Source of the DNA: Nageia nagi
Lineage: Eukaryota > Plantae > Pinophyta
Direction: 5' to 3'
Assembly (NCBI GenBank): GCA_050084985.1
Contig: JBITNC010000001.1
Coordinates: 15,934,001 to 15,998,000 of the forward strand
DNA length: 64,000 bases
Under the pieces are notes generated by a model. The model saw only the letters and a program-made list of their open reading frames with translations. It was not told the origin of the DNA and did no database searches. The position numbers and the translations under genes are program-made. This document shows positions 34,801 through 59,700 of this stretch, piece after piece; positions within the stretch are counted from its first letter, which is position 1, and the number at the start of each line of letters is the position of its first letter.

Positions 34801-37287
34801 GAGATTATTTCTTGATTTTTATCCTCTATTTATTAAATAATTATGATCATCAAGAAAAATAATAATTAATACACATACTTACAAACTAGAAGTTCCACAC
34901 AAGTTTTTATGTGGAAAACCCCATGTGGGAAAAAAACCACAAACAAAGAGATAAATCTTATATTACATCATTAATAATTTTACATCTTCATATATACCAT
35001 GTACATGATAAAAATATATTTTCTTTAAATTTTTTAGGTTGACTTACATATGAATTTATATCATTAAATATTCTACAATAGTATTGAGAACTAGAATATT
35101 AGTTTCATTGATTAAAAATGAATCTTTACATGCATATATAGGATATGGATAATCCTATATATAGACTCAACTAAAAATAGAATTAAGTTGGATAAACTCA
35201 ACTTGTTACATCCAATCCAAAAAGTTAACTATAATAAAAGTGTATATCCTAAGAAAAATTGTAATAATATAGAAGACATCATTCATGCAACTCATAGGCT
35301 CAAAAAAGCTAATCTAAGACTCAAAATAGAAAAAATGAACATACCAAATATATACATGAAAGATTTACTTTTTTGGAAGTCAAGTTTGCAAAATTATCCC
35401 CCTTGATGCTAAGGGGAATCACTAAGAGGATCCTCAACTTCAAAAACTAAGATTTAACAACTCCTTTGGTGAAGATAACTGTAATGTTATATAGGTGTTG
35501 TAATGCCTCAATTTTATGATGTCCTTCTCCACCATATCTCATATGAATTGATACTTCATGTTGAAATGTTTGGATATATTATGGTGGAATGGATTATATG
35601 CCAATTGGATGACACTTTGATTATAAAAAATAATATTGTACAATCACTTTGTTTCTCATTAAGTTCCTTAAGAACTTTCCTCAACCATAATGCTTGAGCA
35701 CTTGCACTTGTGATTGCAATATACTCTACCTCTGTAGATGAAAGTGCAATACTAGTTTTCTTCTTTGACTTCCATGAAATGAGTTCTAAACCAAGGCTAA
35801 AATATTTTCCAAATATGGATTTTCTATCATATAAGCTACTCCCCCAATCAGAGTCACTATATCCATAAAGTATTATCTCATCATTCCTATAGTATTGTAT
35901 GCCAAAATATTATGTGCCTTTGATATAGCTCATAATCCTCTTGGTTTCTTTCATGTGTTCTTCAGTAGGATCATTCATGTACCTTGATACAAGTGAGATA
36001 TCATGGGCAATATTAGGCCTAGTATTGGTGAGAAACATTAAGATCCTACCTAATTAAGCTTCTATATGTGGTTACTTCAACTTTTGGTGTTCTATCATAT
36101 TTACATAATAGTTGCACATAAGCTATAGCAATTGGTACTAATTTGCATTCATCCATACTATATGTTTCAACATATCATGTGCATATTTGGATAGATAAAT
36201 TAAGATATTATCATTACCTTGAGAAACTTCCATACCAAAGAAGTAGTGCATCAATCCTATATCATTGATTTTAAATTCTTGCATCATAGAGGTTTTAAAA
36301 TCATCATTTATTTATGTACAACTACCCATGTAGATTAGATCATCCACATAAAAAACACAAGTAAGATGCATTTACTCTTCTTGATAATGTAGAGAGTGCA
36401 CTCACTCTTGCTCCTTGTGAAACCATATTTATGGAAGTACCCATCAATCCTTTTATACCAAGCTCTTGGAGCACTACTACATTTAACCAATTTTGCATCA
36501 TGCTATGTGTCAATCTATAGTGTATTTGTTTTTGAAATAACCATAAAAATTATGATGTTCAAATTGATGCTAAGGGTATTATCAACATAAACATCACTTT
36601 GTGTATCAACCTATATACGACTTTGCATTCAATACAATGTGAACGTACATATGTAGAAGATCAAAATCCCTCCATAAACATCTTTCTATGCATCCTATGT
36701 TGATGTTAGAAGAATCCAATAATTAGTGTTCATAATGTCTTGGTATGCACCAACTACAAATATTTAAAGCATCTCATCAACTGTTAATAACATATTTTTA
36801 ATGTGTTAAATTATAAATGTTTAAAGCATCAATAATAAACATTTTAGATTGTCAATCATAGATACTTAAATCATCACATTATAGACATTTAAAGCATCAA
36901 GTAGAACATCATTTAAAAATGAATCCTTTAATATGCATCTCTTGAAACATTTTTAGATGTGTCATATAAAGCTTTAAATTGTTGTAATAATTTTTTAATA
37001 CATTACATTTTAATATTAATTTAGTTTTATTTTTTTAATATAATATAATATAATTAATTATAATCAAATAAATTAAATTAGAATGAACTAAAAAAATAAA
37101 TATAATTTAAAAAATAATAAATTTAAAACTTAAAACACATTAAAAATAAATATAACATTCATAAATACATTCACAAGGTTTTTCAATTGTCATAAAAGAG
37201 TAATCAAATGATAGTATATACAATTTCAATCAAAAAAACATTATTTGTAGAATGTCTCATAAATAGCACCACATTTATCCTAATACC

Positions 37288-38859
37288 CTAAATCCTTTGC
37301 TTACTATCACCATGCCTAAACTCATCATCATCAAAATCTAATTTCTCATCATCATTGAAATCTATGTTGAGAATTAGCTAATCCTCTAGCTAACTCTCCT
37401 AACCCTGATCTTGACCCTTCGGCTGACCCTCCTAACCTTGGAAAGAATAATTAAATAAATATTAGTAAATAAGAAAAAATTAAAAATTTTATGCATAAAT
37501 ATCAAATAATATAATTAATTAATAAAAATTATGTAAAATATTACTTATAGTCTCAACTGTTATCTTCAATTGTAGTGCTTGAAAATAATGTTGAAGGGCA
37601 TATTTTACTTCATCTCTTAAAGGATTTCTACCATATTTGGTGAACTACAAAAAAAAAATATTTAATTAAATAATATTTTAAATATTTGACTATTTATTAT
37701 AAATAAATAATTAAATATACTTACAAATTTGGATTCAATCCCTACTTTTTCCAATTTGGCTAACTTATATGTATAACTAATGGAGGATGTCATATATCAA
37801 GCATGCGTAACTTTTTCATACCGTGATGGTTTAGATGTAGATTCTTTACATGCTTCCTCCTCCACTTTCTTCGCAAAGCTCTTCTACACTTTTTTTTCAA
37901 TATCATCAAGCCTAATTCCTTTATGCTTTTTTTAATAAGTTTTATTTATCTTCTGACCTTGTCCCTCCTCTAATTCAAATTCTTTCCCATCTATTTCAAT
38001 GCCCAATCTACACAACATCCTTCATCAAATTCTTTTTTAATGATATCTATCACTATTTGTTTTCCTAAAAAATACACAAATTTTTAAAAATTAAGTTAAA
38101 AATCTAAGTAAAAAGTACTATTAATAATAATATATAAAAAAATGTATATGATTATAACACTTTATTTTCTCAACTCATGATCTAATATGAGATCAAACTG
38201 ATGGAATGTGCATTTTTGGAGAATATCATAAAACATATCTTGAAGAATATTTGACAATATTAGTAAATTAATATATCCAAAAATAAATATATAAATATAT
38301 ATTTTTTAAAATCAATTTGTACCCTTCTTATTGTTAACAACTACACCCTTTTCATCCATTTTTATTTCAATATTATTATTGCCTTTGCACATTAGAAATT
38401 CAACTTATTGATTGACCTTTGACTCTATATCTACAATTATAATACTTACATTATCCTTATTGAATGTAATATTTATAAGAATTAATTAATAGAAGGTTAT
38501 TTCAATTATTTTTCTAAAATTAATAAATTAAAAAATACTACCACCCTCTGGTGATGATCTCGTTGATGATGATGTGGCAACATTGATAGAAAACCCAATC
38601 AAAGTCCCAATGCCCTTTTTTGTTAATTTCCCTTTCCAATTCACACCTATCCATCCATTTTATGGCCATTTTAGACAATGTGTCCACTGCCTAAGTTTGT
38701 AAACAAGATAAAGAAATAAATTTATTTTTTCTTCTAAAATGAATATTATTAAATAAAATATAATCAAATCATATTAATACATATAAATACTTACTTAACC
38801 CTTCTTGCTTGGTATTGTCTTTGGATTTTTTTGCTTCTTTTATCTCCATCATCGACCAT
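37288..38859 (-). pseudogene. Multi-exon CACTA accessory gene, putatively TnpA/Ptta-like
   Basis: About 7 exons bounded by GT/AG-like sites within very AT-rich introns: MVDDGDKRSKKIQKT; AVDTLSKMAIKWMDRCELEREINKKGHWDFDW; IDIIKKEFDEGCCVDWALK*MGKNLN; DDIEKKV*KSFAKKVEE..KPSRYEKVTHA; acidic tail. The family assignment is inferred. Confidence 0.55.
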
Positions 38860-39404
38860 GATAATCACTAAATAAAGATAATTAAAAAAATAATATTAGT
38901 ATAATAAAAAAATGAATATGTAAATTATAATAAAATTTAAAATTTATATTAAAATTATGGTTAATTTTTATTTATCAAAATCAAGCGTAAAACTTTTAAA
39001 CTTTAGACCCTAAGATCCTAAATATTAATGTAAGATTATAAGACATGGAATATTGTAATGTTTTTGCCAAATGTTGAGATGATATACATGCAACTCGTCA
39101 ATTAACAATTTATAGATTTTTCAAAAAGAAAATAGTGGGAAAGGTTGTTATTTTGGATGGTGGTTATTGTTGGTAGGAAGATAGAATAAGACTCATGTTG
39201 GTAAGAAGATTTAGTATTTGGTACATAAATTTCTAATGAAGGTCTTTATATTTTGAAATTTAGATTTAAAATATAGTTTCTTTTACATCTACATGTTAGA
39301 AATTATGAAAGAGTTTTGATGGACTCTCTTCTCAATTTGAGTATTGAGTTGTTTGGTTATAATAGATGTAGAGTATTATAGTATTGTAGGATAGAGTATA
39401 AAGT

Positions 39405-40460
39405 CCTAATCCTAAATGTTTCAAACCCCTAACCCTTAAGCCCTAATTGTAACCCTTAAAACCTAACCCCTAGCCCTTAAATCTTAACTATAACCATTAA
39501 CCCTTAACCCTTAATCCCTAACCCCACACCCTAACTTTAACCCCTTACCTAAACCCCTAACCCCTAATGCTTATAAAATTAAAATGATAAATTATAATAT
39601 ATAAAATTTAATGTTTATGAAATTTATATTATTTTAAAAATAAAAAATTTATTAAATTATTATAAAATTTATATATTATTTTAAAATAAAAAATGTATAT
39701 TATTTAAAAAATTATAACCCTGAAATTTATAACCATAACCCCAAACCCTAACCCTAACCCTAACCCAAACCCTTAACCTTTAAACCCTAATTGTAACCCT
39801 TAACTTTGAAAACCTAACCCCTAAACCCTAACCTTTAACTCAAACCTCTAACCCTTAAACCTTAACCCCTAACCCCTAATCTAAACCCATAACCTTTAAT
39901 TCTTACCCCTAACCATAACCCTAACTATAACCCTTAAATCGTAACCATAACCATAACTCTAACCATAACCCTAAACCCTAATCCTTAAACCCTAAACCCT
40001 AACTATAACTCTAATATTTAACCCCTAATCCTTAATGCTTACCTTGAATCCTAACCATAATACTAACCATAACCCAAATTTTATAACCATAACCCTAATT
40101 CATAAACCCCTTAAACTTCTAAACTTTTAAACCCCTAAACATAATCTCTAACCCTAATTATAACCCCTAATGCTTAATCCCTAACTAACGACCCTTAACC
40201 TTAAACCTACCCTACCTAACCAAAACCTTAACCATAATTTGTAATGCTTAATTCCTAACTAACCCTTAACCCTAAACTTAACATAACCCTTCAACCCTAA
40301 ATATTAACCTTTAGCTCCAAACTTAACCCCTAAAACCTAAACATTAACCCTTAACCTCACACCCTAATCATAAAACCCCAAATCCTAATCCCTAACCCTA
40401 AACACTAACCTCAAACCTTAAGACATTAACTTTAAACCTTAAGATCCTAAACTCTAAATG
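39405..40460 (+). repeat. Degenerate telomere-like array (mixed CCCTAA / CCCTAAA) with an AT-only spacer at ~39570-39715
   Basis: For example ccaaaccctaaccctaaccctaacccaaacccttaacc. Confidence 0.9.
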
Positions 40461-42596
40461 TTATCTTGTTACTATGTTAATGTTAAGTTAAATGTTTAAA
40501 ACTTAAGTTATATGTTTAACATTAATTTAAAAATTAACTCTAAAATTTTTAAATAATTAACAATTGATATTAAATTTTAAAACTTTAAATAATTAATAAT
40601 TTATATTAAATTCTTAAATAAAATAAATATTAATTTTTATTTTAACCTTAAACATTATAAAATATAAACTAAAATAATGAGTAGTTAAAAATTATAAATT
40701 AATTAGTGAGTTGTTATTTATAAATAATGGAGATGTGGTAATTTTGAAGAAACAAAAGAAAAGAGGATATTGCTATTGGATTTTTTGGTGTATTTTTATA
40801 TAGTTTTCAAAATTGAATGATTTTATGGTTTAATATTTCAAACTTTCTCTAATTTCAAGTTAAATTGAAACCCTAGGTCATTTATACTTCAAAATTTGTA
40901 AAATTGCACAGTTAAATTGAAATCTTAGTTTGTAAAATTATTTAAACCCTAGTTTGTAAATTTGTTTCATTTTTCAAACCTTAGTTTTTTTCAAATGTTA
41001 GATTTAATTTTTTGAATTTCAACAAAACTAAGAATCTAGGGTTTAGGATTTTCCTTATGGAATAGGGTTTAGGGTTTTCCTTTGGTATATTTTTATTTTG
41101 AAATAAAAATTTCTAATTCTAAGCAAAAACATTTCATTTCTATAAAAGGATTTTAAATATTTAATGCAAATTTGAATTTCAAAGTTAAAATTTGAATCTA
41201 GAGTTCTTACCTCTAAATCTTACTATGAATCTATCAAAAATTAGTTAGATTTTATAAAATTTAATGTTATATCCTTCTCTCTTGCTAAAATATTGTTATT
41301 CTTTATCTCCTTCCTCTGACACAAACGAAAATGATGTTTTGTGGGGTATGTGGGGCATGTCCCTTTTGTTTTATCCCTTAGTTGGGGTTTGATGTATTAC
41401 TTGACATATTGAATGTGTTAAACAATGTGTCAATCCATTATTCAACCAATGCATCAACCCTAATATATTTTAACAAAAAAATATAATTAAATTAAATTAG
41501 TAAAAAATTAAATATTAAATAGTATTAAAAATACTTAAAAAATTAAATTAAATAGTTAAAAAAATGAAATAGGAAATTAAATTAAATTAATAAAAAAATT
41601 AAATGGTAAAAAATTAAATTATAAAATAACATGATTTAATATATTTAATAAATATATAATTTTTTAAATTAAATAACCTATTTTTTATATTTAAAAAATG
41701 TAATTAGTTATGTTTTTTATTTAGATAATATTTTTTATATTTAAAAAATATTAAATTATTTATATTTTTTGTTTAAATAATATGTTATACTTAGATATAA
41801 ATGAATTGTAACGATTTTATCATATTAGCTTAGATTGTATACATGTGTGATTTATTTTGTAAATGCATATGCATTTACCTTTAAAATTAACATCAATGAG
41901 TTGGAAGTCATGACCAACCATTGATTCTATTATTCTTGAGTTCCCAACACCATATTTTTTTAGTCATAGAGCCAGCTACACTTGTATTTGATCACCAAGG
42001 TAGTCATATGTTAGAATAGGAGTCATTACTTTCCATCGAATGATTATAAATAAGGGAGATGAGAGTTTATTTAGGCAACATTAATGGACTAGGTAGTCCA
42101 TTTGCTACATTATGAGGGTAGATACTCTTAGCAAGTCCAATGACATTCCCTATGCCCCATTGCACTTCGAGGATACTTTTAGTCACCAAGTTGATACTTA
42201 ACCCTAGGAAGCCTTTTATCCACCATATTGATCTTGAAGCCCATGTCGGTTAGACAAGGGTTAGATTATTGATAGTGGAGGTAGAGTTGTAATGACCACT
42301 TCTATATAATATTATGTGACTCATTGGCAAGATATGGTAAACCTAGCTAATAGTTTTATCATTCTAACTTACTTTAACACTTGACTAGTATACATTCTAT
42401 GAAAATTAAAAACTTTAAAAAAAATCTTCACACCACTCACATTAATAAGATTTAATCAATTTGTGAAATTGTAAAAAAAATGACCACATCCCATTACATG
42501 ATAAAGTAATTAGGTATATAGGTTGTTTGATGCACATTTGTAAAGTTATAAAAAAGATAACCACATCATATTACATTTCCTTAATTCAACTTTTTT

Positions 42597-43397
42597 ACCT
42601 GAATCCTAAACCCCTAAATCTTAAACCCCTAAACCCTAAACCTCTAAATTGTAAACCCTATACCCTAAAACTTAAACCGTATACCCTATACCCTAAATTC
42701 TATATCATAAACCCTATATCTTAAATTTTAAACCCTAAACTCTAAATCTTATATCCTATACCCAAAACCCTAAACATTAAACCATAAACCTTAAACCTTG
42801 AATCATAAACCCTAACCCCAAAATCCTAAACCTTTAACCCTAAATATTAAACCCTAAACCTTAAACCCTATATCTTATACCATATACCATTACCCTAAAT
42901 CCTAAATCAAAAATCATAAACCCTAACCCAAAAATCCTAAACCTTTAATCCTAAATATTAAACCCTAACCCCAAAACCCTAAACATTAAATCATATACCC
43001 TAAACCTTAAATCCTAAATCATAAATCCTAACCCCAAAATCTTGAACCTTTAACCCTAATAGTACACCTTATATCCTAAACCCTAACCCTAAAACCATAA
43101 ACCTTTAACCCTAAATATTAAACCCAAAACACTATATCCTAAACCCTAAACTCTAAATCATAAACCCTAATTCCATAATTCTAAACCTTAAACCCTAAAT
43201 GTTAAATCCTAAACCCTAAACCCTATAACTTAAACCCTATATCCTACAACTTAAACCCTATACCCTACAACTTAAACCATATACCCTAAATCATAAACCC
43301 TAACCCCAAAACCCTAAACCTTTAATCCTAAACATTAAACCTTAAATCCTAAATATTTAACCCTAAACCTTATATCCAAAACCTTTAACCCTAAACT
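42597..43397 (+). repeat. Degenerate plant telomere-like array (mainly CCCTAAA) with higher-order units
   Basis: For example aaccctaaaccttaaaccctata; recurring tcataaaccctaaccccaaaatcctaaacctttaaccctaaatattaa. Confidence 0.9.
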
Positions 43398-43492
43398 ATT
43401 ATTTTTTATTTTATTGATTAATGTTGAAGTATGTAAGTGACTTCATTATCAATATTATCATTGGCTTGGTGATCAATATGTGGAGGGTTATA

Positions 43493-45010
43493 ATGATTGA
43501 TGTTTCATCAAATGATGATCCTATACCATCATTAATTCATGAGAGGAGGATAGATATTTCATCATCAGATGATGAAGACCAGATTGATGAATATTATACA
43601 ACACCAAAAATTCATCTTAAGAGAACATATATATCATAGAATGAAAATGAGGTATATATCATGAATCAATAGTCAATTTTTATTAGATATGTAGCAATGT
43701 AAGATCAATTAAATTATCATGTTGATGATATTATATGCAATATTTAACTAGTTAATATTATGGCTAATGTTATTAGATTGTCTCCCATATTCATATTCAA
43801 AGGATGATGATGATCGTGAGGTAATTAATTAGCATGAATGACTATTTAATTTTATTTTCAAATTATTCATGAATAATTATCTTATCTATATTGATGTTTA
43901 TATTAGGCTTAATGAAAACTCTTATTAACCATAATTAAGTCTTCAATTGGAAGAGATAAAGTATCCATAGAGTTGTACACAACAAGATGTGCATTTCCAT
44001 AAATTGAACCAATGGATGATAATGTGATATAATGATTTAGTGATGTTATTACTCTTTATTATAGGGTATTTGTTGTATGTGGGTGTTCAATATGTAAGGA
44101 TTGGAAAAAGAATAGAAGGGAAGATGTATAAATACATTATTATGATGTTGATGTACCAAATATAGAGGGAGCATTACTTCCTACAGTTAGGAAAGATCTC
44201 ATTGGTCCAGTTGAACCTACTAGATGTGTTAAACATCTAAAAGAGAATGTTTCATTTAAAATACAAAAATATGTAGATTCATCGGATGAAGATAGAGCAA
44301 AACTATGTACAATAATAAGAAATGAAGGATGATTTCACCTATTGCTACCAAATGTTGAGCCACTTGAGCTACCATATGAGAGTGTTGGTGATTTGCATTT
44401 ATAACCTAATTATGTGCATTTATATAAGTCTACCTATGAATGTAAGGCACATGGTACATGGTCAATCGAAAAATATTTTCCAAAAGGTTATGAACAGTTC
44501 ACTTGTTGTGCTAATTCATAAATGATCAAACCTTCTAATCTACATAATGTAGGCATGGGTTGTTTATATTACCAAATGTGTGAGTTCATCCATATAGTGA
44601 AAAAGAACCATTGATGCCATTTTATGGGATAGGTTACAATATAACATATTAGAGGATATTAGCATATATTATTCAGTATGGCTAAATATGGTATGAGTGG
44701 AAATCAACATCAAAAAAAAAAGATTTAGGATGTTTGTACATTGATGGCCAACCAAAGACACATGGAACATTGCATGATATATAAACAGATCCAAAGGCAC
44801 CAAAAGTCTAGCAAATTGTATTTTTATAGAATATGCAAATGATATTTTGACTTTATGCCTAGAAAAATGAGAACTTTTGTAGGTGTATATCCTATTGTAA
44901 CTCTTTCCCCTAGTGATGAGATCTTAGTACACTACAATATCAATAAATTTATTCTAACACATAAGAGATGTATGGATTTAGAAGATCCAAATGTATTTAT
45001 TAAACTATGA
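43493..45010 (+). pseudogene. CACTA-borne SET-domain gene: acidic 5' exons plus a long exon (44065-45010) with CxCxxC and SET
   Basis: Manual translation: VFVVCGCSICKDWKKNRREDV*IHY ... MIKPSNLHNVGMG/LFILP..EPLMPFYG..KYGMS..LYIDGQPKTHG/NIA*YINRSKGTKSLANCIF..FVGVYPIVTLSPSDEILVHYN. SET motifs I-IV occur in order. Confidence 0.75.
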
Positions 45011-46843
45011 CAAAAACATCAAAATAATGGATATTATAGTAGAAATTGAATAATATTATAGTAGGAATGTAGTTATGACTCTCTATGTTACTTGCTAGTT
45101 TTTTGAAGAACCTCAATGGAGGTTACTTGTTGAAGAACCTGACTATTGGAATTGCTACTAAATTTTTACTTAAACTCATGTACTTGTTAAAATAATTAAC
45201 AAATACTTATTGGATATTGCAAATAATGATGTAATGGACATGCATTGATTTTCCCTCAGCATTATGATATATGAATAGAAATATAATTTATTGATGTATT
45301 ATAATAATAATTTTTTAATCATACACTTGTTATAACTTGTTTACATATTAAATTAAAATATTATATTTTATAATTATATTAATTATTTGTAATAAATAAT
45401 TTCACAGGCACATCATACTACAACAAATACATAAGATAAGTCAAATACAATATCATATATGTCAATCCTACATCAAAAAAATATTCATTGGAAAAAAGGA
45501 AGCAACAAAAAAACTTATTAAGGATGCATATGTAGAATTCATGAAAAACCCAAATCCAAAGCTCTTGTTCATATAGTCATGAATTTAGATAGTGATAATG
45601 ATGAAAGATAATATAATGCTCATGATCAATAGCAAAGTGTAATGCATGGTTTATTAAAATCAATCTATACACATGAAAATGATGATATATACATGACTAA
45701 TAGTCCTCATACACATGATGATGTAAAAGAAGGTAATTTTGAAAATGATAGCATATATATTATTGTCAAAACACCTTTATATAAAGAAGCATGTATTTCC
45801 AAGTTGGAAGTGATCCTACTTCTCATGAATATAAAAGCCAAAAATGGATGGTGAGATACAAGTGTCAATGATCTTTTGAACATATTTTTTTATTTTACAA
45901 TTTTTTAATTTCTATAAATTTATAGGATATTTTTTTCATTATTTATTATTTGTATAATAATTCTATTTATTGTTTGTATTATAGGTTACTAAATGAAAAG
46001 TTGCTTCTAAGTGATGATGTCATCCCTTCTTCATGTAGAAAGGTAAAAAACAATTTGAAGGATGTAGAGGTATCATTTGTTTCATACCATGCTTATATTA
46101 ATGATTTCATATTATATAGAGGACCATATGAAAAATTGATTATATGTCCAATGTTTGGTGTAAATAGATATCATTTAGTAACTACAGGGAATAATGTTCC
46201 TCAAAAAAAATTTCACCATCTTCCACTTATCCATAGATTCATTATAATGTATAAGTTCACTTGCACAATATATAGATTGGCATACAAAAAATATAAGTGA
46301 AGATTTTGTATTACTATTCCTAAATATTCTAGAGTAATGAAACATATAGAAAATATGTGGCTTGATAAATTTCGAGATGAACCTAGGAGTATTAGTTTTG
46401 GGTTTAGAAATTGATGGTATAAATCCACATTCCATACAATCATATAATTATTCAGTATGGCTATTTTTATAATTAATTATAACATATCTCCATGGATTTC
46501 CCTAAAAAAGAATATTTGTTGTTAACTCTCTTAGTTCTTGGACCACATAAGGTAAAAAATATAGATGTCTTCTTTGAACCATTAATTAATGAATTGATGC
46601 AATTATGGAATGAAATTTAGAATATGATTGATATAAGTAGACCAATACAACAAACATAATTCACATTACATGGCATACTATGTTGGACTATACATGATCA
46701 TCCAGATCTTAGTGTTTATTCAGGTATTTATATATAATCTTGATTACATTTTCATGTATAATAAAATAATATCTTGTAAATATTTAATTTTCTTTTACTA
46801 GATGGTAATATGTTCTATAATAAAAATGTATTGCAAACCTTTG

Positions 46844-48007
46844 TGTATGTCAAAATTTGTGCTATATGTGTCTCAACAAGAATAAACTAGTTAAATTCAC
46901 ACACAAATCTTCACTTGCATAACCATGCTTTACTAAATATGCATTCACTAAAAACTTAGGTAAAGATAGATTCAAATCTTGAAATATGGAACTCAAAACT
47001 TGCAATAATATAAAGAAACCCTAAATGCATCTAATGGGAAGAGTAGCCTCCTAACCTAAGCCCTTTAAGGTACCTAGGAGAGCTTGGAGTGACTTTCTTC
47101 ACTCCAAAAAGCATGTGAGCTCCTAATCCCTCAATTCATTGAGAACATAAGAAATTTGTATGCCTATTATGCAAATGATTAGGTCTATGTGTTCCTAATA
47201 CAAATTAAATGGTAGATTCAAACAATGAGTGCAATCTTTACATGTATCAATGACAAAATGCAAGATCTAAACCTTTAAACTTTCAAAAACTTCAAATGAT
47301 GCAAACATAAATATCTTTAAATATCCTTGAATCAAAGCGATTCAAGGATACCCACAAGATCCTATGAGTCTTAACAAGGTGTATTTATGATACTATGGAT
47401 TCAAATAATAAATCTAGTGGTGGAAATGCGAGTTATCATGAATTTAGCCTATACATCATACTACATGCAAATAATTTGTGCTGGATACAATAGTTAGGTA
47501 GATCCAAGCTCCTCCAATGGTTGAATGAGCTCCAAATCCTACAAAAACCTTGAGCATACAAGTATATTTGCAATTTGAAGTGAGTTTTGTAAAAATAATA
47601 CTACCACAAGTATGGTAGCATGAAGATCCTTAACTTGTGATGATGAAAGATCCTTCAAAAGCATGTAACCCTTGAGAAATTCTTCAAACCCTTTCGCAAT
47701 CTTGGAGCAATAATTGTGAGAGAAAAAATCATAAGTGGGCATAGGAGTAAATGAGTCAATAATTGATTAGAGTTTTAGAATTATAATTTTCCATTGATTT
47801 ATATACCTCCTTTGTAACTTAAGTGAATATAGCTAGTTACCCACTTTTGCAACCTTTTATATTAAAGTCACCTTTTGCTCTAATTTGGACTTTTGAGTAG
47901 TTTGATTTTGCATAATAAACATTAAGGTTAAATAAATAATGCATTACAACATGTCAATGTTATAAAAACACATCTACTTGAAAAAGTGTTATTTTTTAGT
48001 GTCTATA
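46844..48007 (-). mobile_element. Solo LTR of the Gypsy family seen at 5446-6598
   Basis: Perfect TSD CTTTG (46839-46843, 48008-48012); full-length similarity to 5446-6598; inserted at the start of a Tnp2 exon. Confidence 0.92.
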
Positions 48008-49509
48008 CTTTGTACAAAAGGATATCATGCTTATCGATGGTGTGCATAAAATCCCACAATAAGATATTCAAAACACTTGCAGAATATGGAATACCTTGGC
48101 CATAGAAAATATTTATCATTGGACCATGAGTTTTGAAATATGAAATCATAATTTAATGGTAATACGGATCACACCCTAACTCTCAATTATGCATCTCCTA
48201 TTGATTGGTTGGAAAAGTACCAAGAAAGTGAATAAATATATTGGAAAAGAGCCTTTGACGAAGGTATTGCTGAAGACAGAGGATGTTGTTGTTCACAAAT
48301 ATTACTTACCCTAAGATGAAATTAACAAAATATTATATCAATATATTTTTTTTATTTGAAAAAATACATGTTTGTAATATATCAATTTCATTATTTTATC
48401 AATTAAATGATTAATTTTACATATATTTTCAGGTATGAATAGACTATCAATATTTTGTAAATTGGATTACTAGAAGGACTTGTTAGTGATACATTTATTG
48501 GATCATATGCATATTATAAAGAATGTTGCATCTTCTTATATCTATATACAACAAAGAATCATACATCATTCAAGTGATATATAACTTAAAGGCCAACAAA
48601 ACAAAGTGTGCCCTTTGGGTAACTAAAAATTCAAATGGAACAACAAATGTAGCTACTCCAGCCTCATGGATTATGACTAAAGATGAAGTGAACATTCTAC
48701 AAAATCTTATTAAAACCATTAAAACACCAATAGGATATGCATCATCTCTAAGAAAACCATTCACTATTGATGAAAAAATGACAAGATTAAATTATCATGA
48801 TTATCACAATGTGTTAAAGGTATTCTTGTATTATATGTACATCAAAATCCTTATATATTTGTATTAATATATATTTTATTCATCTATATATTTATTAATA
48901 TTATTTTTTTACAAATTATTTTTCCACTTACAATTCATGAATGTGTGAGTTTACCTTCTTATCTAAGATATGCAGTTGGTCAACTATCATTATTTATAAG
49001 GTATTTCATGTTATTTATGATACTACTCAATAAGAAAATATAGTGTGTTTATTGTTATTTTCTAGTTTTTTATACATGTTGACATATGATGATTTTAATT
49101 ATATTTTCATAAATAGATGGTTAACTTCAAAGGAAATACATATGAATGAAATCCCTAGATGAAATAGAGAAATTGTTGAAATTATTTGTAAATTTGAAAA
49201 AGAAATTTATGTTGCTTTTATGGACATTCAAGTGCACCTATTGATCCACCTAGTAGATGATACTAAAATAGTAGGTGTTATAAGTACTAGAAGCATTTTT
49301 TTTGTGGAGAGATTTTTAAAAGTACTAAAAGAATTTATTAGACAAAAATCAAGACTAGAAGGATCTATGTGTGAAGGATACATTGTACTAAAGTCTTTTT
49401 TTATGTAAATTTCTATCTTAAATTCATGATTCATCCCCAATGATATGGTTTCAAGTAGATAAATACATAAATAAATTAGAAGGGAAGGTTTTAGAAACAA
49501 ATGAGAGAC

Positions 49510-51866
49510 TCAATGGAGGGGATAGGGTATGGAAGAAAATAATATAGTACAATGGAAGAAGTGATAACAAATTGGATAAAAATGATATGTATCTGAGCTG
49601 AAAAACACGTGAGAAATGTATTACAAGCCCATTATCATTGATAATTATAGAAGCAACGTAATAGTAGAATTTTTTAACAAAAGGAAAGTGAAGCATGAAT
49701 AGTCTTAAAATTAATATATGTAAGGGATAAGGAGAACATAGGGGATAACATATTAAAAAATAAAAATGTAAAGCCTATTTAAAAGTTGAATGCCATATAA
49801 ACCATGCCTCAAATTTTGATGAGGGAGGGATTAAAAGTTGTAATAAAAGTTTAGGTCATTAATATGATGGAGAGAAGTGCAACATGTAACCTAACTTAAC
49901 ACAAACTAGATGATGAGGCAACATACAAGAATGAATGAAGATTTATGGGGATTAGCATCTAATGGATTAGGAATTATCAAGGGTGGTACTTACAGAGGAT
50001 AGGAAGAAAACCAACATTACATCATAAGTGGCGATGGGTGGAAGCCACAATCCTCAATTTGGAAAGTTCCATAGTAGTTTTATGGGATAGTAGATAATTA
50101 TTTTAGCCTGATTTGGAAGAATGAGAGGTGAATTGGTGAAAATAGAGCCAAAAAATATAGAGCTAGTAAGGAAGAATGCTACAGTTTAGAATATTTTATG
50201 TGAAAGGGGCCTAAGGGATTTTATGGAAGCCTACAAAGGCTTTGATTTGAGCCTCTCATTAGAAGTAGCCAAAAAATGGGCAAATTATCATTGTAAGATT
50301 AATTCAGTCACCCATGATTTTAGTTGTAAGGCAATGATAAAAGTAATCCACATGTTAAATCAAGGAGAGAAAATTAAAAGGGAGTCTAAGTTGAGAAAAT
50401 TGGAGGAGATCTTTAAGTTTAGAAAGCAAGTGGAGGACTTTGTGAAGTTGGGACCAAGATTTGAGAGGAAAAGCCTACCAAATCCCTAGGATGAAGTTGT
50501 GAGGGCTATAATGCATTATGTAACACTTGAGGGGCATCATAAAGTGGTATATACTTACCACTTTAGGATTTTGGACCATTTCAAAATTAAAGGGGAAAGG
50601 TCAAATTTCCTTTCTTTATTTGCCATTCATTGGAGGTATCTATTAATAGATGCAAAGGTAAGATAAATGTTATCCCATTGCATCAATCTATTATCAAGTT
50701 GTTGTATGATGTGGCTAGGTATAAATAGCCTTAGAGAAGCTTGAGAAGGGGAATGGAGTTGCATGCAAACATAAGCTCTCGAAGGATAAATAATGGTAAT
50801 ACTAAGGCTATGTCAAAAAAGGAGGAGGATAATGTAGGTAAAGAAAATGAGTTTGAACCCCTTGAAGTAATGAACGATGAGGAAGTTGTTGATCTTTTTT
50901 TGGGGATAAGGAGAGATGGGGTGTCAAGAGAAGAAGAATGAGAACCTCTAGTTCAAAAGCTAAGGTGGTGGAAGAAAATTGGGGAGGGATGGCTATAAGA
51001 ATAAGGTACCAGAAAACTATAATGGCTAAATAAGATAGTAAAAAGGTGGAGAGTAATATAGGAAAAATAATGTAGAGGAGAGTGCTGAACATAATGGAAC
51101 CTCTAGTAATTCAAGCTTGCCAATAATAACAAAGGAGGAAATGCAAGCTCTCACATAAGCAACAACAACCAAAAAGGTGTAGAGAAGGGTGAGGACTCAA
51201 AGAGTGGAGGTGAATGAATCATTCAAAATGGTGTGCATTATAGTTTTAGGAAAGAGAGGGGTGAAAGCCATCCTAATCTTGATGCTAAAATCTAAAGCCA
51301 TGCATAATAAAATACTACTCAAAGCAATCACAAAGAAAGGAGAGCATAGCAAGCATTATGAGATGGTGTAGCTAGAAATTCCTCTTGCATTCCTCATAGA
51401 GGGAAATTCATACATGGAGATCTACAAGAAAAACTTCTCTAACTTGGCCTTTAGATTCAAAATGGACAATGATATGATCCTCATCTGACTTGGTGTTGGT
51501 TTCATTTAGGAAGTCGTGATTTGTTGTGTTTCTTGCTATGTCTTTGTGGTAATAGGTGAAAGGTGATGTCTTTAATTTTAGGTGGGTATAAATGATTTTT
51601 TGGTTATTTATGCCTATTTTTTTAGACCCTTATCTGATTTGGTAAGTGGTACACCATAGGCTATGTATTTTGTAAGTTTATGAAAGGTAAGAGGAGAGTG
51701 CATGCTTCACTTTGATGGAAAGGGACATTTTTTTGCAAGTACGATTTGTAATTATAGTCTCTAGTTGATATTATATATTCCTACTTTGAGAGGCTAGTTG
51801 ATGTAAAGATGCTAGGAGCTTGATAATCCCTCTTTGTTATTAATATAATTTACCATTAATAAAAAA
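49510..51866 (+). mobile_element. 5'-truncated non-LTR (LINE-type) retroposed insert, 2.36 kb
   Basis: 17-bp TSD AGAAA[C/T]AAATGAGAGAC (49493-49509, 51867-51883); ends in ATTAATAAAAAAA; Tnp2 sequence resumes afterwards. Confidence 0.8.
50121..51370 (+). pseudogene. Extra ORF of the retroposed insert (plant transposon protein / Transposase_32-like, tentative) with a charged low-complexity tail
   Basis: MRGELVKIEP..GLRDFMEAYKGFDLSLSLEVAKKW..SLPNP*DEVVRAIMHYVTLEGHHKVVYTYHFRILDHF/..FPFFICHSL..PLHQSIIKLLY. The end is approximate. Confidence 0.55.
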
Positions 51867-53414
51867 AGAAATAAATGAGAGACCATATTCTTTTAATTAA
51901 GGTACTAACTAAATTTTAGATAATAGTAATTTATATAAGTAATATGTAGTTGTAATTTTGATTTAATCTAATCAATAGTTACTAACGAGTATATTTTATG
52001 TCATCATGAAATTACATATCATGACATGTATGAATTTGTAAACCATTTTATCATGATGAATATGGAATGTTGTAAAGAATGGATTGAATTGTATGATAGT
52101 AAAAGAAGTGCAATTCTAGCACAATGTGTCTTGTTTCATAGTGAAATTACAAGGAGTAAACCTCTACCTACACATCTAAGAGATGAAAAATGGTCAAAAG
52201 AGTATCCAAGGTCATGGATAAAATAAATAATTGAAGAGAAATTAGTTAAAGGTGCAGAAGAAAAGACCTATAAAGATGCTTTAAATATGGCTGACAAATG
52301 TAATTATGAGATAATTATTCATTTATTCATATGCATCTAAGTTTAAATATTTTTATAATATAGTTATAATTAATATAAATATAATGATTGCACTAATAAC
52401 ATTTATATGTAAGTGTGTGTAGGCATTATCTTTCTCTGCAATGTGGGCATATGGTCAACAGTTCAAAAATGAAAAAAAAAATATGAATAAACTGATATTT
52501 GATTGTGGATTCATGGTTGATTTCGACCAAGCAAGTCATGCAAGTACAAAAGATACAAACTTGATAGAAGAAAAAATACAATATGTTAGACAAATTCAAG
52601 AAATCTTACAATTGAATTTTAGATCATTCAAGTTTTTAGTATTTAAATGTAAAAGGGTCAAATGATTTGTAAATATATTAACAATTTTGCAATATATTCC
52701 TAGTGGTTTTTTATGCAATTGAATCCACATGATATTTACCTCAAGAAAAAGAGCCTTATATTTTACCACAATATTGCAATCAAATATTTTTATTTCCATA
52801 TGTATTGGATGAAAATATGTAGTTTGTAATTGATTGTGATCCTAGAGGGAAACATGTTATACATCTTATTGATGAAGACAATAATGATGATTAAAATATT
52901 ATATTTGATGAATTAAGCATTATATATTTTAATTGCAATATTTTTATAGCTATTATGTAATTTGTAGATTACATTTTCATTTTAAATATTTACAAAGATA
53001 AACCATTGAAAATTAACATATGATCTAAAAAATCTCTTGTTAACATATAATTTGTTATGGTATATTATGTTATATTGTTCTAATAATTAAGCTCATCTTT
53101 GCCATAAATTACCGCTTAGACTTTCCAAAATTATATGTCTATATCTCCCTGATGATTTGATCTTTAATGATGATATGGATGTCATACATATAAATAGATG
53201 GGGCAATCTATCATAGGATTTGCCTTGGAAATCATAACCACTAACCCTACAACCAAAACCAAAATTGCCTCCATCATCACCACTTTGCCTCCTTGTCCCT
53301 ATTATGTAGAGAATCCAACACCATGTCAAGATATAGGCTCTTCTATATTAGAATAAAAAGCAAAAAATATGCAATCTAGATATGCAAATCATGAAGAAAA
53401 CCCATAATTATGCA

Positions 53415-53650
53415 CAATACAACATCAAATAAAACATCACATGAAACATCAACTTAAACATCACATAAAATGTCAACTTTAGAGTAAAAAGTCGCATAAA
53501 ATATCAAAGAAAAGTTGCATAAAATATCATCAAATGAATTTGACATGGTTTGATGCAAACATTCCATATGATGATGTAATATATGTTATGGCATCATAAA
53601 ACTAATTTTTGATGCATATTTCAATGTAAAATGGCTAAAATGTAGTAGTG
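53415..53650. repeat. CACTA right subterminal repeats and TIR
   Basis: Repeated AAACATCAC/AAATGTC/GTCGCATAAAA units; similar units at ~36580-36960. Confidence 0.7.
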
Positions 53651-54692
53651 GAGCTTGCTTGAGACCATACAAGGCCTTCTTTAAATTATACATAAGATTT
53701 TCCTTACCTTTTACCTCAAAGCCTTTGGGTTGTGCAACATAGACCTATTCATACAAATATACATTGAGAAATGCACTTTTAACATCCATATGATTCACTT
53801 GCTAACCTTTGTGTGCAGCTAAGGAAAGGTCCAATTTGATTATATCTTACCTTGCTACAAGGGCAAAGGTTTCTTCATAATCTATACCATACCATTGGGT
53901 GAAGCCCTTAGCCATAGGCCTTGCCTTGTGTCTTTCAATGCTCCAATTAGCATTGTATTTGGTATTATATACCCATTTGAAATAAACATAGTTTTTGCCT
54001 TTGGGAAGCTCCATTAGCTCCCTAGTAATTTTTTCTTCCATTGCCTTCAACCAAAAATCATTAGTGCAATCTTGATCATAGTTATATGGTTCAATTTCTA
54101 CACTAGTTATCAATGCATAATTAACTACACAATCTTTGGGTTCATGATCATCCTCATCACCATACATTTTCAAATTTTCAAACCTCTTTATGACTTGATC
54201 AAGTTCACTTTCTTGGCTCCTAGTGAATCTCCTTGAGAAATTTTGATCCAACATTTGATTGTATGGATGGGCTTGAAGTGTTATTTTACCTTTCTTTGGT
54301 ACACTTGAAATGTCTTCTTCCATGGGAGTGAATGAAGGACTTGGAGTGTAATAACTTGGTTTATTGTTATGATCAATATACTGCACTTTAGAGGAGTTAT
54401 CACCATTGGATCCATCATCAACATAGAGTGTTTTATGACCCTAGGCTTCCCCTTCATAGATAATTACATATCTCAACAATACAACCTTATGTATTTTGAA
54501 TTACACAATCTATATACCTTGGTTTTCTTACAATAACCAAGAAAAATACATGCTTAACTCTTAGAGTCTAATTTTCTCCTATTTTCATTAAGAATGTTAG
54601 CATAAGAAAGATAACCAAAAACTCTAAAATGCTTTGCATTAGGATTTTTATCATACCATGCCTCATAAGGTGTGATGCCTTCCAATCTTGGA

Positions 54693-56708
54693 TGATATAG
54701 ATTTCCTACAAGAGACCAAAACATATCTCCAAAATTGATTCACAACACACAAGTAAATCAATGGAAGAATAAAATTCAAATTAAGAAATCTTTATTCTTT
54801 TGAATCTACACTCCTCCCTCAAAAGGATTACAATAATATTTTATAAAGCATCTCTTTCTTTCTTTTTTAATTTTAAAATCATAAAATATAGCTTAGATGA
54901 GACCCAAAATGGAGCCATGCATCCATTACTCAATACATGCAATTATTCTAAAAATAGAACTTAAAGATAGAACTAAAAGTAAAAGTGAAATTTAAACTAT
55001 ACAAAAAATGTTTTAGGCTTCAAAATTATCTCCCATGGGAGATGTTACAATCTTGTATATATTTAAATTCTACATGATTTTTTTTTAAAGGGTTTGAAAT
55101 GATACTTGTATCAAAATTTATGTCCTTTGGAAGTTGGGGTATTAATCTGCTGCATAAAGAAAGTGTAACTCGATATTGTAGGTGCATCATTCTCCTTTGG
55201 TTGAAAATAACTCAGCCCCTAAGTTTTGATAATCTTAGAAATTGAAAATACCCAAAAAGCCCTTCATTTTAAATATTCTTCTTTTCCAATTGGTCTTTGT
55301 ACTCTTCTCTCTACATCTTGGATTCTGGAATCCACTTATGATCCTCCTCCTTTGTTGAGCTTCTATCTTTCTCCATCTTTGCCATCCTTTGGAAAAATTA
55401 TTTATCTATTCCCATGAAATAAAATTATCCCAAAACTATGTTTAACTCTCATATTCCTCATCAAAAGCTTGTTGGTCAAAAAACTCATCATACTTTTGAG
55501 CATCATAATGATTATCCATGTGCTCCACTGCTAGTTTTAGAAGAAACTATATTTCTTCTTCTTCCTTGGCCTCCATTTCTAAATCAAATAACTCCAACAC
55601 CTTAACTAAAATGACATTTTCATATCTTGATTTAGTCTCCAATATCTCTTTAAAAAATTTATCCATCTCTATGGCTTCTTCTATTAGCTCCATAACTACA
55701 GAAGATAATTCTATAGCTTTAATTGAATTAACAACCTCATATTTGATTTTAGCTTGCATGATATTCTCTGAGATCTTGTTTGTTTGTTGTATATATTCAA
55801 TGCCTTATTCCTACTTAGGCATACTCCTAATCACCAACTCAAAACTCTCAGCTACAACCATATGCTTCTCTGCAACTATATAATGGTAAGGGTTCTCAAA
55901 ACCCTTTTCTTTTTCAACCAAGATTAACTCTATTAATCTCAAATTCCTCTCTCTCCATGGGAATTTTATCTTCTTCATACTCATAATACAAGGTGTCAAC
56001 CAAGCTCTTCTTTGACTCTCATTAGCCTTAAGGTAACTAGCCTTGGAGCACAAAAGTTTTGCCTCCTCCATGAGATGTCTGCATTCAAACTTTATACTCC
56101 TCAGAGTATCTTTTGATTGCAATTGTTCATGTTGCTTCTTTATTTGCTTCCCTTCCATGGTGATCCAAATCTAATCTTCTATCCAACAAGATCAACTAAC
56201 TCTGATACCAGATGATGTAGATTCCTGCAAGAGACCAAAATAGATCTCCAAATTGATTCACAACACACAAGTAAATCAATGGAATAATAAAATTCAAATT
56301 AAGAAATATTTATTCTTCTAAATCTACACTCCTCTTTCAAAAGGATTACAATAAGCTTTTATAAAGCATCTCTTTATTTTCTCTAATTTTAAAAAAGCCT
56401 AAAGTATAGCTTAGATGAAGCCCAAAATGGAGCAATGCATCCATTACTCAGTACATGCAATTATTCTGAAAATAGAACTTAAAGATAGAACTAAAAGTAA
56501 AAGCAAAATTTGGGATGTATGAAAAATGTTTTAGACTTTGAAATTATCTCCCATGGGAGATGTTACAATCTTGTAGATTTTTAAATTCTACACAATTTAA
56601 AATAAAAAGGGCTTAACATGATATTTGTATCAAAATTTATGCCCTTTCGAAGTTGGGATATTAATCTACTGCATAAAGAAAGTGTAACTTAGTATTGCAG
56701 GTGCATCA
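54693..56708 (-). mobile_element. TRIM/LARD-like non-autonomous LTR element (2016 bp; LTRs 54693-55189 and 56213-56708)
   Basis: TGAT..ATCA LTRs of ~497 bp; perfect TSD TTGGA; PBS TGGTATCAGAGTT; purine tract CCAAAGGAGAA. Confidence 0.92.
55400..56158 (-). pseudogene. Uncharacterised helical/coiled-coil-like ORF filling the TRIM interior
   Basis: ORFs 55811-56158 and 55547-55759 are in the same frame, separated only by stops. Rich in E/K/I/L; no gag or pol motifs recognised. Confidence 0.55.
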
Positions 56709-59700
56709 TTGGAATCCTATTTAAGATGTAGATTATTTTCCTCACTAAATTAGCCTAGTACATATTAGTTAACTACTTTCTTTGTAGCATGTACCTTGCC
56801 ATTTTTCCTCTTCTCCATACCATTTTGTTGTGGAGTATAGGTAGTTGTGAGTTACCTCTTTATTCCATAATCTTTACAATATTGGAGGAATTCATTGGAG
56901 CAAAACTCTCCTCCTCTATTAGTCCTTAAACATTTAACAAGACATTCAATTTGTTTTTCCACATGGGCTTTAAACTCCTTAAAACATTAAAAGGCCTCAT
57001 CTTTGGATGTTAGCAAATAACTCCAATACTTCCTTGTGTAATTATCTATGAAAGTGAGAAAGTAGGAGTTCTTACCCAAGCTTTATGTTTGCATGGGTAC
57101 ACAAATATCATAGTGCACCAATTGGATGGGATAAGAAGCTCTCCAATCTTAGCCTTTTGGAAACTTCATTCATGAGTGCTTTCCCAAAGCACATCCTTCA
57201 CACACATTATCTTATTCAATCTTGGGCATCCCATTGGCCATTTGTTGAGATGTCAACAATATCAAACTTTGGTAACTTAAATGTCCATATCTCGTATGCC
57301 AAAACCAATTCTTATTCTCAACTGCTACATTTTCTAGTTGGCACAATCTCCTCTAAATTTGAGTGGAAACAATATATTTTTGGTCATTAGGACCATTGTG
57401 AACAACCTATGAACATTATTCTTATCATATATTAAGAAATTTCCATCTTCAAATACAAGTTTATAGTTCCTTTCCATTATTTATCACACACTTAGCAAAT
57501 TATGTTTGATATTAAGAATGTAGTAGATCTTATGTATCTTCCTAGTGCCCCCTTTGGTGCTAAAGTCCATGGCTCCCATGACTTTAACATTCAGTGCATT
57601 ATCATATCTTATCTTTATATTAGACTTGAAAGAGTTTTCCATTTAAGTCAAATAACTCCCCTTTACCAGTCATGTGATTATAGGCACTAGTATCTAGAAT
57701 CTAATTTTCATTGAGATTCTAATTAGTCTTCCCATAAGAAAAAAAAATTGAGGATCCATTCTCATATCCATAATGGGTTTCACTTCCACCTTCTTGAGAA
57801 ACCTTTGTTCTACACTCCCTCTCATAGTGTCCAAATTTATTACAATAGTAGCATTGTTTGTTTTGCTTATCTTCCCCTCTAATTGAACCATCTCTACCTC
57901 TTCCTCTTCCTTAGGAAAATCCTCTCCTTCCTCTTCCTCTTCCTCTTGAAGATGATGGATCTATCCCTTAGACTATTCCTTGTGCATTAGTAGCTTCAAC
58001 CTTCTCTATTGCAATGGCCTTTTCTTCATTAACATCTACATATGATGGTGTGGAATCTTTAAGTCTCTCTTCATGGGACATCAAGGATCTCATGAGTTAA
58101 TCATAAGTAAGAGTTGAAAGATCTTTTGACTCTTAAATTATGATTACCACATGGTTTCACTTGGGAGGAAGTGTCCTCAACACTTTCTTCACCATAACCT
58201 CATTTAGAATCTCCTCTCTAAGGTTCTTCATCTTGTCCACAAATGCTTTGACTCTCACATAGTAATCTCCCATAATCTCATCACCTTGCATCTTGAGATT
58301 CTCAAAATCTCTCTTGAGGGTTTACAACCTCACTTTCTTTACTTGAATCTACCTTGATATCCATATTTGAGTGATAAGCTTGCAAATTATAAAGTGCAAA
58401 GGAGTTCTTCTTCTGAGCCTCCTTCTTAGTAGTCTTATCATTAGGTTGGAGAGTGTTCCAGTTTTTTGGATCATTGTATCCTTCCTCAACAATATCCCAT
58501 ATCCTTCATTTTGATATACAAGTACTCATAATCTTCTCCATGGAACTCTAAGATGGGTAAAGTATTGTTGTTTGCAACCATTTTACAATGCTCAACACAA
58601 CAAAAAAACTTGGGCCTTACTCAACCTTTGCAAGAGTTTCTCTAAAGTCTTGCAACCACCCATAAGCTATTGTCTAACACATTAAAATTCAAACCTTGCT
58701 ATAATACCACAATGATACATAAAATATTACTTTCACTTATTAAAAATGAAATCTTTACATACATATATAGGATTTGGAAAATCCTATATATAGACTCAAC
58801 TAAAAATATACTCAAGTTAGATAAACTCAGCTTGTTATAATCCAATCCAAAAAGCTAACTAGAATAGAAGTTTGGATCCTAAAGAAAATTATCCTAATAT
58901 AGATGACATCACCCATGCAACTCATAGAATCAAAAAAGCTAATCTAAGACTCAAAATTAAAAAAAGTGAACTGTTAAATATGGACGTGCATCCTCTACTT
59001 TTAGGGAAACCAAGTTTCCAACAAGTGCAATACTAAACCCTTTTGGGACAACCATTTGACAAAGATATTCTATAATGCAACATGATTGATGTAAAATATT
59101 TCCAAGCCTTCTAAATTGACATAATCAATTATTCATTACCACTTAGTACCTTTTCCAAGATTAATGTTTTCCTTCATTATTTGGCATGACAGGTTTAAAT
59201 GTCATGCCTATGTTTTTCTTCTACCATAATAATTTCTATTAGAATATCTACATATATTATATACCAACATTATATTATAAGAATCCCTTAATGGAAATTT
59301 AACCTCAGATTCTTAATATTGAATGCCCTCTAAATCTGAAATGAGCAATAGAAATTTAAAAGCTTGCCTTTCTAAACATAAGTGCATGATCTTCTATTTT
59401 ATTGAACTATATTTATGTCTTAAGCTATAATCAAATATCACATTATTAAAAGAATTTTTATATACTTCATAAATAAAAATAACCTTTTATTTCATTAATC
59501 AAACATAACATTAATCTATACAAATCAAAGGTATATTTTCATATCTCAACATTACACATAACCACATAATTCATAAATCAAATATCCTTACCCATTTAGA
59601 CTAAAAGTGTCCTTATATTGAAACTAAATGTCCTTATATTCCATAACTTAAAATATTATCTACTAAATGAAACAAAGTATTCTTACATACTCATTAAATC

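Follow-up and report, generated by a model that had tools for sequence, protein, structure and literature searches.

We analysed a 64,000-nucleotide stretch of the genome of the conifer Nageia nagi (assembly GCA_050084985.1, contig JBITNC010000001.1, positions 15,934,001 to 15,998,000 of the forward strand; referred to below as the window), which is AT-rich (G+C 30%) and contains a CACTA (EnSpm) DNA transposon. Inside this element, approximately 1.4 kb 5' of a Tnp2-type transposase gene and on the same strand, lies a decayed gene at 44012-45049. This gene is probably a dead copy of an accessory gene of its Tnp2-type CACTA family, encoding a protein with a Cys motif and a SET-like domain. An earlier note on this DNA had pointed to the same region as a SET-domain gene carried by a CACTA element. 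The features that matter for this reading are listed here by their window coordinates.

36472-53650, + strand: whole CACTA (EnSpm) element of 17.2 kb, inserted in a Ty1/copia reverse-transcriptase gene
36472-36499, + strand: 5' terminal inverted repeat (TIR), with the target site duplication (TSD) GAG at 36469-36471
53623-53650, - strand: 3' TIR, with the TSD GAG at 53651-53653
44012-45049, + strand: pseudogene of the SET-like accessory gene, about 345 codons long; its frame is shifted by 5 deletions and interrupted by 10 premature stops
44078-44137, + strand: N-terminal Cys/His motif, CGCSIC then ..IHYY, read from the sequence
44522-44733, + strand: N-terminal half of the SET-like domain (MIKPSN..VGMGLF, PFYG), with three frameshifts
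44734-44941, + strand: C-terminal half of the SET-like domain (YIDG..NIA.YIN(R)S..ANC..DEILVHYN), which is the half with statistical support
45400-49405, + strand: decayed Tnp2-type transposase gene, with PF02992 at 46483-46617 and DUF4218 (PF13960) at 49163-49405

A search for CACTA...TAGTG pairs left 36472-53650 as the sole good candidate for the element. The two ends (CACTACTACATTT) agree in 23 of 28 bases and are both flanked by GAG, beyond which a copia reverse-transcriptase gene (KALYGLKQAPRAWY) continues, one half on each side. The window holds two Ty1/copia copies in opposite orientation (16800-20770 versus 35440-36471 plus 53651-58590), which are 76-90% identical over several kb. Since the second of these copies is split by the CACTA insertion, the first could be used as an empty-site control. 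This inverted copy is uninterrupted at the junction (19746-19751, within 19600-19900) and carries CTC/GAG only once. The paralogous empty site confirms both the boundaries of the element and the 3-bp duplication, and thereby the TIR- and TSD-bounded CACTA that the earlier note had described. Downstream of the SET-like gene and on the same strand, again as that note had it, Pfam recognized both PF02992 (E 1e-8) and the DUF4218 domain PF13960 (E 1.5e-20). Inverted CACTA termini, a 3-bp TSD and a Tnp2-type transposase are therefore all present, and the membership of the element in the CACTA superfamily is secure.

Three-frame translation placed every motif quoted in the earlier note where, and in the frame in which, it had been read. 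The reading frame that starts with VFVVCGCSICKDWKK at 44066 includes CGCSIC at 44078-44095 and spans 152 codons in frame 1 (44066-44521), with four in-frame stops. At 44522 begins MIKPSNLHNVGMG, followed in the next frame by PFYG (44617-44628). Further downstream, YIDGQPKTHG is followed by NIA, a stop codon and YINRSKGTKSLANC, the block YIDG..NIA(stop)YINRS..ANC spanning approximately 44737-44818, and SDEILVHY is found at 44912-44935. The extent of 44065-45010 that had been assigned to the gene proved too short at both ends. The ATG at 44012 is kept in all four copies that cover this site (the window and three of the loci described below), and the terminal stop at 45047-45049 is common to all six DNA copies.

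The damage to the window copy was called by alignment with the five other DNA copies. The suspicion of about five frameshifts turned out to be exact, with five deletions located after 44559 (1 bp), 44665 (2 bp), 44704 (1 bp), 44765 (1 bp) and 44843 (1 bp); at the last of these sites, an extra A is present in some contigs from DNA runs. The origin of the premature stops is another matter. They had been explained mostly by C>T changes, but C>T-type transitions can account for only two of the ten. In five, a GAA or GGA codon has changed at its first base by G>T or A>T, with G>T (GAA>TAA, GGA>TGA) as the prevailing change. With five frameshifts and ten premature stops the window copy is dead, as had been proposed, and it is the single copy of the SET-like gene in the window, where no others were found.

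Because the short stop-free pieces of the window gave no match in Pfam (nine pieces, searched separately), relatives of the gene were sought. A 66-aa N-terminal query retrieved only open reading frame (ORF) fragments of 40-120 aa, all on short contigs from ENA, JGI and Logan; none of the matches was an intact or a named protein. The C-terminal piece retrieved the fragment P0010. In total, about 20 ORF fragments were collected from these three sources. In addition, five JGI metagenome loci (L001-L005) were found to be 77-84% identical at the DNA level to window positions 43400-46830. L001 and L003 span the whole gene in a single frame of about 1035 bp without frameshift. Since the same frame occurs in independent copies, two of which have no frameshift, the ORF in the window is more than a product of chance. 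The continuous frame of about 1 kb in these two loci requires no intron, in agreement with the earlier description of the gene as intronless.

The loci L002, L003 and L005 are collinear with the window from the SET-like gene into the adjoining downstream region. L005 extends as far as a 120-aa piece of Tnp2 (PF02992, E 1e-31), with the gene order of the window. A place ahead of the Tnp2 region is thus seen in three loci, one of which reaches the transposase domain itself. When contigs from three DNA runs were placed on the window at an identity of at least 80% (4858, 27290 and 22476 contigs), all 30 bins of positions 43400-49399 were covered, in the SET-like and the Tnp2 parts alike. The collinear copies and the run coverage lead us to conclude that the SET-like gene is a standing part of an abundant CACTA family and not a one-off capture. 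More distant relatives add to this picture. P0013 is a stop-free version of the entire SET-like part (177 aa), and relatives that are only about 40-45% identical keep both IHGNI.G.INN.K..NC and DE(I/L)L..YN.

The identity of the domain was addressed at the level of single sequences and of profiles. In Pfam, PF00856 was the top family for two relatives, P0024 with 17.1 bits (E 0.0075) and P0015 with 16 bits (E 0.017); in each, the match spans model positions 47-105. A feature search of the ESM Atlas with the stop-free 147-aa piece L003:1590-2030 returned SET clusters in 30 of 30 cases, with a score of 0.93. For profile-profile comparison with hhalign, reference SET loci (L006-L014 and L025-L104) were fetched from viruses and prokaryotes, the degenerate pattern RF(I/L/V)NHSCxPN serving as the retrieval motif. 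The nine viral loci form alignment A8; seven of these were checked and all were verified by Pfam (E 2e-20 to 4e-6). A second, independent SET profile was built from 80 loci of bacteria and archaea that contain the SET motif used for retrieval.

The family alignment A7 matched A8 with a score of 37.5 (probability 76%, P 2.3e-5). Shuffling the columns of A7 was not a fair control, since end gaps became internal ones and the score distribution acquired a heavy tail (7 of 200 shuffles reached the observed score). It was replaced by a dense block of the C-terminal half, comprising 7 rows and 90 columns. Against A8 this block scored 35.0 (83%, P 9e-6), which none of 300 shuffles reached (11.6 +/- 2.5, maximum 22.7). 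Against the 80 prokaryotic loci it scored 35.9 (80%, P 1.4e-5), again with none of 300 shuffles at that level (12.4 +/- 2.5, maximum 27.3). The register was the expected one in these alignments, with IDG..NI.GYINNSKG..ANC placed on iDg..n.aRFINHS-C.PNc and DEILVHY on GEELT.DY. The signal was not confined to one part of the family, as the main family alone scored 30.0 and the divergent pair P0023/P0024 alone 33.6. Profile-level similarity to verified SET sequences was thus found for the half that contains motifs III and IV. The motif with the catalytic Tyr is also present and aligns to EELT.DY of SET. The window has DEILVHY, most relatives follow DE(I/L)L(V/M/L)(H/D)Y, and a few differ, for example as DKLWIHY or DDILVHY. 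The Asn of the NHS motif is conserved across members. In the N-terminal half, whose own hhalign score is not significant (see below), the motifs (A/V)G(I/M)GLF and P(F/I)(Y/F/C)G can be read in the order expected for SET. By these comparisons the C-terminal half is SET-like in its motifs III to IV, and the domain as a whole is likely to adopt a true, though very divergent, SET fold.

A considerable body of results weighs against the SET assignment, or against a function of the gene, and has to be set beside this evidence. Neither L003:1590-2030 nor P0013 matched Pfam SET, 16 of the 18 alignment members had no match when scanned together, and the 22.4 bits that Pfam requires for SET were reached by no member. 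In the PDB, searches with sequences and with profiles returned no SET chain, only chance-level matches to an L21 ribosomal protein and to BlaR1. Two AlphaFold2 models had pLDDT values of 29 and 39 and were unusable. The ESM Atlas search with P0013 gave a score of 0.82 and no SET cluster, so that the result obtained with L003 was not repeated. The hhalign probabilities of about 80% are below the usual mark of 95%, and the signal comes from one SET subgroup and from pooled profiles; a profile of a three-sequence SET subgroup gave a non-significant score of 14.6, in the same register. For the N-terminal half, 3 of 200 and 51 of 200 shuffles reached the observed hhalign score, which is not significant, the best local match being each time that of AGIGLF on the SET motif GxGxFA. 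The His of NHS is absent in every member, where INNS, INSS, INNF or INNI is found (INRS in the window). As regards function, the ratio of non-synonymous to synonymous substitution rates (dN/dS) is about 1 among six DNA copies that are terminal and dead, and two premature stops are shared between copies. A TGA at 44330 occurs in all four copies that cover the site, and a TAA at 44303 is common to L001, L003 and L004, and five database fragments terminate at it. Lastly, no RNA of the SET-like gene was seen: the RNA run X6 contains no contig over the gene, which allows no verdict on its expression. A search of NCBIfam and a tblastn search of plasmids returned nothing useful.

Seen together, these tests uphold the SET claim of the earlier note only in part. 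The C-terminal half is significant in profile-profile comparison, while Pfam stays below threshold and the N-terminal half is not significant. The Pfam check that had been suggested with PF00856 did not yield a match at threshold, even though this was the top family for two relatives. The interpretation of NRS in the window as a decayed NHS has to be dropped, because the family reads NNS, NSS, NNF or NNI even among relatives at about 40-45% identity.

The N-terminal Cys/His region is kept as CGCSRCKGW..EIHYY in P0002 and L003, and reads CGFS in L001 and P0004. Its proposed likeness to the transposase-associated domain found no backing in Pfam: neither PF13963 nor any other family was found at E values up to 10 in L001:131-529, window 44036-44128 or window 44132-44329. 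The Tnp2 frame downstream has no PF13963 of its own in Pfam either.

Pairwise dN/dS values calculated by the Nei-Gojobori method for the six DNA copies range from 0.7 to 2.3 and are centred near 1 in both halves of the gene. These copies have drifted neutrally since they diverged. The dN/dS comparison proposed in the earlier note therefore came out near 1, for a sample that consists of terminal dead copies. At larger distances, the conservation of the motifs at about 40-45% identity hints at a past constraint on the SET-like gene. The domain lies too far from Pfam SET for a canonical host SET gene to have been copied recently. This distance and the retained motifs both point to an old gene that was probably under constraint at one time. 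The divergence, together with the collinear copies and the run coverage, bears out the view that we are dealing with a component of the family and not with a recent host capture in this copy. An intron across 44303-44350 was considered as an explanation for the shared TAA and TGA and was rejected, as no GT..AG pair removes both stops. Since the stops are shared and cannot be removed in this way, the master of the subfamily to which the window copy belongs was probably already broken in its SET-like gene.

Several further features surround the gene within the element.

43418-43636, + strand: conserved acidic open frame (DDPIPSLI.ERRIDISSSDDEDQ), stop-free over 73 aa in the window and over 81 aa in L003:454-696
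42607-43396, + strand: degenerate telomere-like (CCCTAAA)n array, found by Tandem Repeats Finder, upstream of the SET-like gene
39424-40354: second degenerate telomere-like (CCCTAAA)n array, also in the element and upstream of the SET-like gene

The acidic frame, for which Pfam returned no match, may be an upstream exon of the SET-like gene. The possible RNA run X6 contains a contig of 525 nt that can be aligned in part with 43498-43694 (23 mismatches and 15 gaps) and continues into unrelated sequence, which hints at a transcribed relative of the acidic segment only. A search for the telomere-like pattern gave 21 matches where 0.05 were expected, and the array at 42607-43396 also occurs in the metagenome contig L004. 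It should be noted that L004 has an unusual structure: in L004:1-1845 an inverted copy of the 5' half of the gene is joined to a segment with the 3' half and the beginning of the Tnp2 region. Either the element was rearranged or the contig is a chimera of the assembly. When L002-L005 are aligned to the window by BLAST, the alignments break at window positions 45190-45360, between the SET-like gene and the Tnp2 frame, where approximately 135-170 bp of the window are without counterpart in these loci. A 67-aa ORF with an ATG start (44322-44525, + strand) overlaps the middle of the SET-like gene in the +1 frame and is nearly open in L001 and L003. We take it to be a by-product, because P0005 and P0017, two ORFs from the databases, are read in the other frame.

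How, then, is the gene at 44012-45049 to be explained? An ancient CACTA master may have taken up a fragment or retrocopy of a host SET gene as cargo that was never used, comparable to the transduplication known from Pack-CACTA elements. Such a passenger would fit the dN/dS of about 1 in all pairs of DNA copies, and it would fit the shared premature stops, in that a master with a broken gene was still amplified to a high copy number. However, the gene is compact and continuous and has a fixed place beside Tnp2, a stop-free version of 177 aa exists (P0013), and the SET motifs are still kept at about 40-45% identity. The domain also stands much further from Pfam SET than would a canonical host gene taken up in recent times, and the database searches, limited by length and by shared words, returned no host-like annotated protein. 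We therefore regard a mere passenger as unlikely. A different objection concerns the fold. The gene could encode a real, family-specific CACTA protein of another fold, for example a TnpA-like DNA-binding protein, that resembles SET in its motifs by chance. The absence of a match at the Pfam threshold, the PDB searches without a SET chain, the very low AlphaFold confidence, the Atlas result that was not repeated, the non-significant N-terminal half and the missing NHS would all be accounted for in this way. What makes a chance resemblance quite unlikely in our opinion is that SET had been named prior to the tests and then ranked first among Pfam families for two members, which match it in one and the same register. 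Moreover, the score lies 9 standard deviations above the shuffles for two independent SET profiles, all 30 Atlas hits for a third sequence were SET, and the motifs are collinear with the order in SET.

It is also conceivable that the region represents one or more 5' exons of the Tnp2 (TnpD-like) transcript, giving a fusion of Cys motif, SET and transposase, or an alternative splice form. In En/Spm, TnpA and TnpD are produced from one transcript. Since no PF13963 was found in the Tnp2 frame, the SET-like ORF could form the 5' part of the transposase transcript, all the more so as the upstream CxCxxC..H lies where PF13963 is usually found. Both genes are on the same strand, and an AT-rich spacer of only about 350-600 bp separates the SET-like gene from the first ORFs of the Tnp2 frame. 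Yet the stop at 45047 is kept in all six copies, neither splice nor RNA evidence for a fusion was seen, and Pfam does not recognize PF13963 in the N-terminal region, all of which renders this arrangement very unlikely.

With moderate confidence we thus favour the interpretation of 44012-45049 as a dead copy of an accessory gene of its CACTA family. The encoded protein of about 345 aa would have consisted of an N-terminal C-x-C-x2-C..H region and a C-terminal divergent domain of the SET/PR type, holding GxG, YxG, IN.S..NC and DEILVHY in the order known from SET. By analogy with further SET genes carried by transposons, active ancestors of the element may have used this protein as a transposon-encoded factor resembling lysine methyltransferases. 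It could have methylated histones or another protein at the element, or it could have acted as a non-catalytic binding module of the SET/PR type. Such a factor might have aided the expression or transposition of the element. The tests gave no support to the role of chromatin writer or anti-silencing factor that the earlier note had suggested. As the master copy was probably broken, the copies of the subfamily represented in the window would have moved without needing the SET-like gene in cis.

Parallels in terms of gene content are known from other transposons. HarbingerS transposons, as well as MuDR families from Phytophthora, encode a SET histone lysine methyltransferase (Kojima & Jurka 2014, Repbase Reports, as cited in PMC12730594). 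As summarized there, they too are cut-and-paste DNA transposons in which a SET-type gene is a regular accessory beside the transposase. They differ in superfamily (Harbinger or MuDR versus CACTA/EnSpm) and, as far as cited, in their hosts, the MuDR elements being from an oomycete. In that summary their genes are described as SET methyltransferases, whereas the gene in the window stays below the Pfam threshold and lacks the NHS His; this comparison is one of descriptions only. Helitrons are known to capture SET, and in red algae the Plavaka elements of the EnSpm superfamily carry PAG2, a gene combining SET and a DNA methylase (bioRxiv 10.1101/2025.02.11.637652). The Plavaka case resembles ours in that an element of the EnSpm superfamily has a SET-containing accessory gene and belongs to a highly amplified family. 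It differs in that the lineage is distant, the transposase is of another type and there are three accessory genes, with the SET and DNA methylase domains of PAG2 being recognized by InterPro. In the window element, by comparison, the SET domain is cryptic, its partner is a short Cys/His region and the transposase is of the Tnp2/DUF4218 type of land plants. The VANC anti-silencing proteins of the VANDAL (MuDR) elements of Arabidopsis (PMC5735166, cited in PMC12730594) are a further point of reference. As presented in the latter source, they are likewise products of an accessory gene of a plant DNA transposon thought to act on its own chromatin state. They are not SET proteins and their activity has been demonstrated, whereas a chromatin activity of the gene in the window is hypothetical.

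Compared with canonical plant CACTA elements such as En/Spm, with Tnp2/TnpD and TnpA, the window element shares the CACTA termini, the 3-bp TSD, PF02992 and DUF4218, and adds a SET-like ORF upstream of Tnp2 as well as internal telomere-like arrays. In its architecture, the predicted domain resembles the small stand-alone SET domains of viruses, bacteria and archaea, being a bare domain without pre- or post-SET Cys clusters. It has the order GxG..YxG..(R/G)(F/Y)IN.S..N..E(E/I)L..Y and a profile match in that register. The identity between these domains and the family is approximately 10-20%, and the hhalign alignments show where they diverge: in place of NHSCxPN the family has NNSKG..(A)NC, in which 4 residues are inserted, and a further insertion of 12 residues precedes motif IV. 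Full-text literature searches returned no description of a SET-like gene in CACTA elements of land plants.

To our knowledge, transposons with chromatin enzymes of their own are rare. A bolder interpretation is that a land-plant CACTA lineage evolved or acquired a working, cryptic methyltransferase of the SET/PR type, of which intact and expressed copies would be present in the genus. By analogy, such an enzyme might be the enzymatic counterpart of the VANDAL anti-silencing protein, or it might mark chromatin for insertion. We consider this doubtful, at about the level at which we would place a chance resemblance to SET. The value of the present case is limited by the fact that all copies examined are dead, that the SET call is based on half a domain and that the catalytic signature is incomplete. 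Nevertheless, chromatin enzymes borne by transposons are relevant to the question of how host silencing is evaded, or put to use, by mobile DNA. The cases found in the literature are those of Harbinger, oomycete MuDR, Helitron captures and red-algal Plavaka, a list that a Tnp2-type CACTA family with a SET-like gene would extend to CACTA elements of the ordinary plant type. If the assignment is true, this family would also provide a very divergent SET lineage for study.

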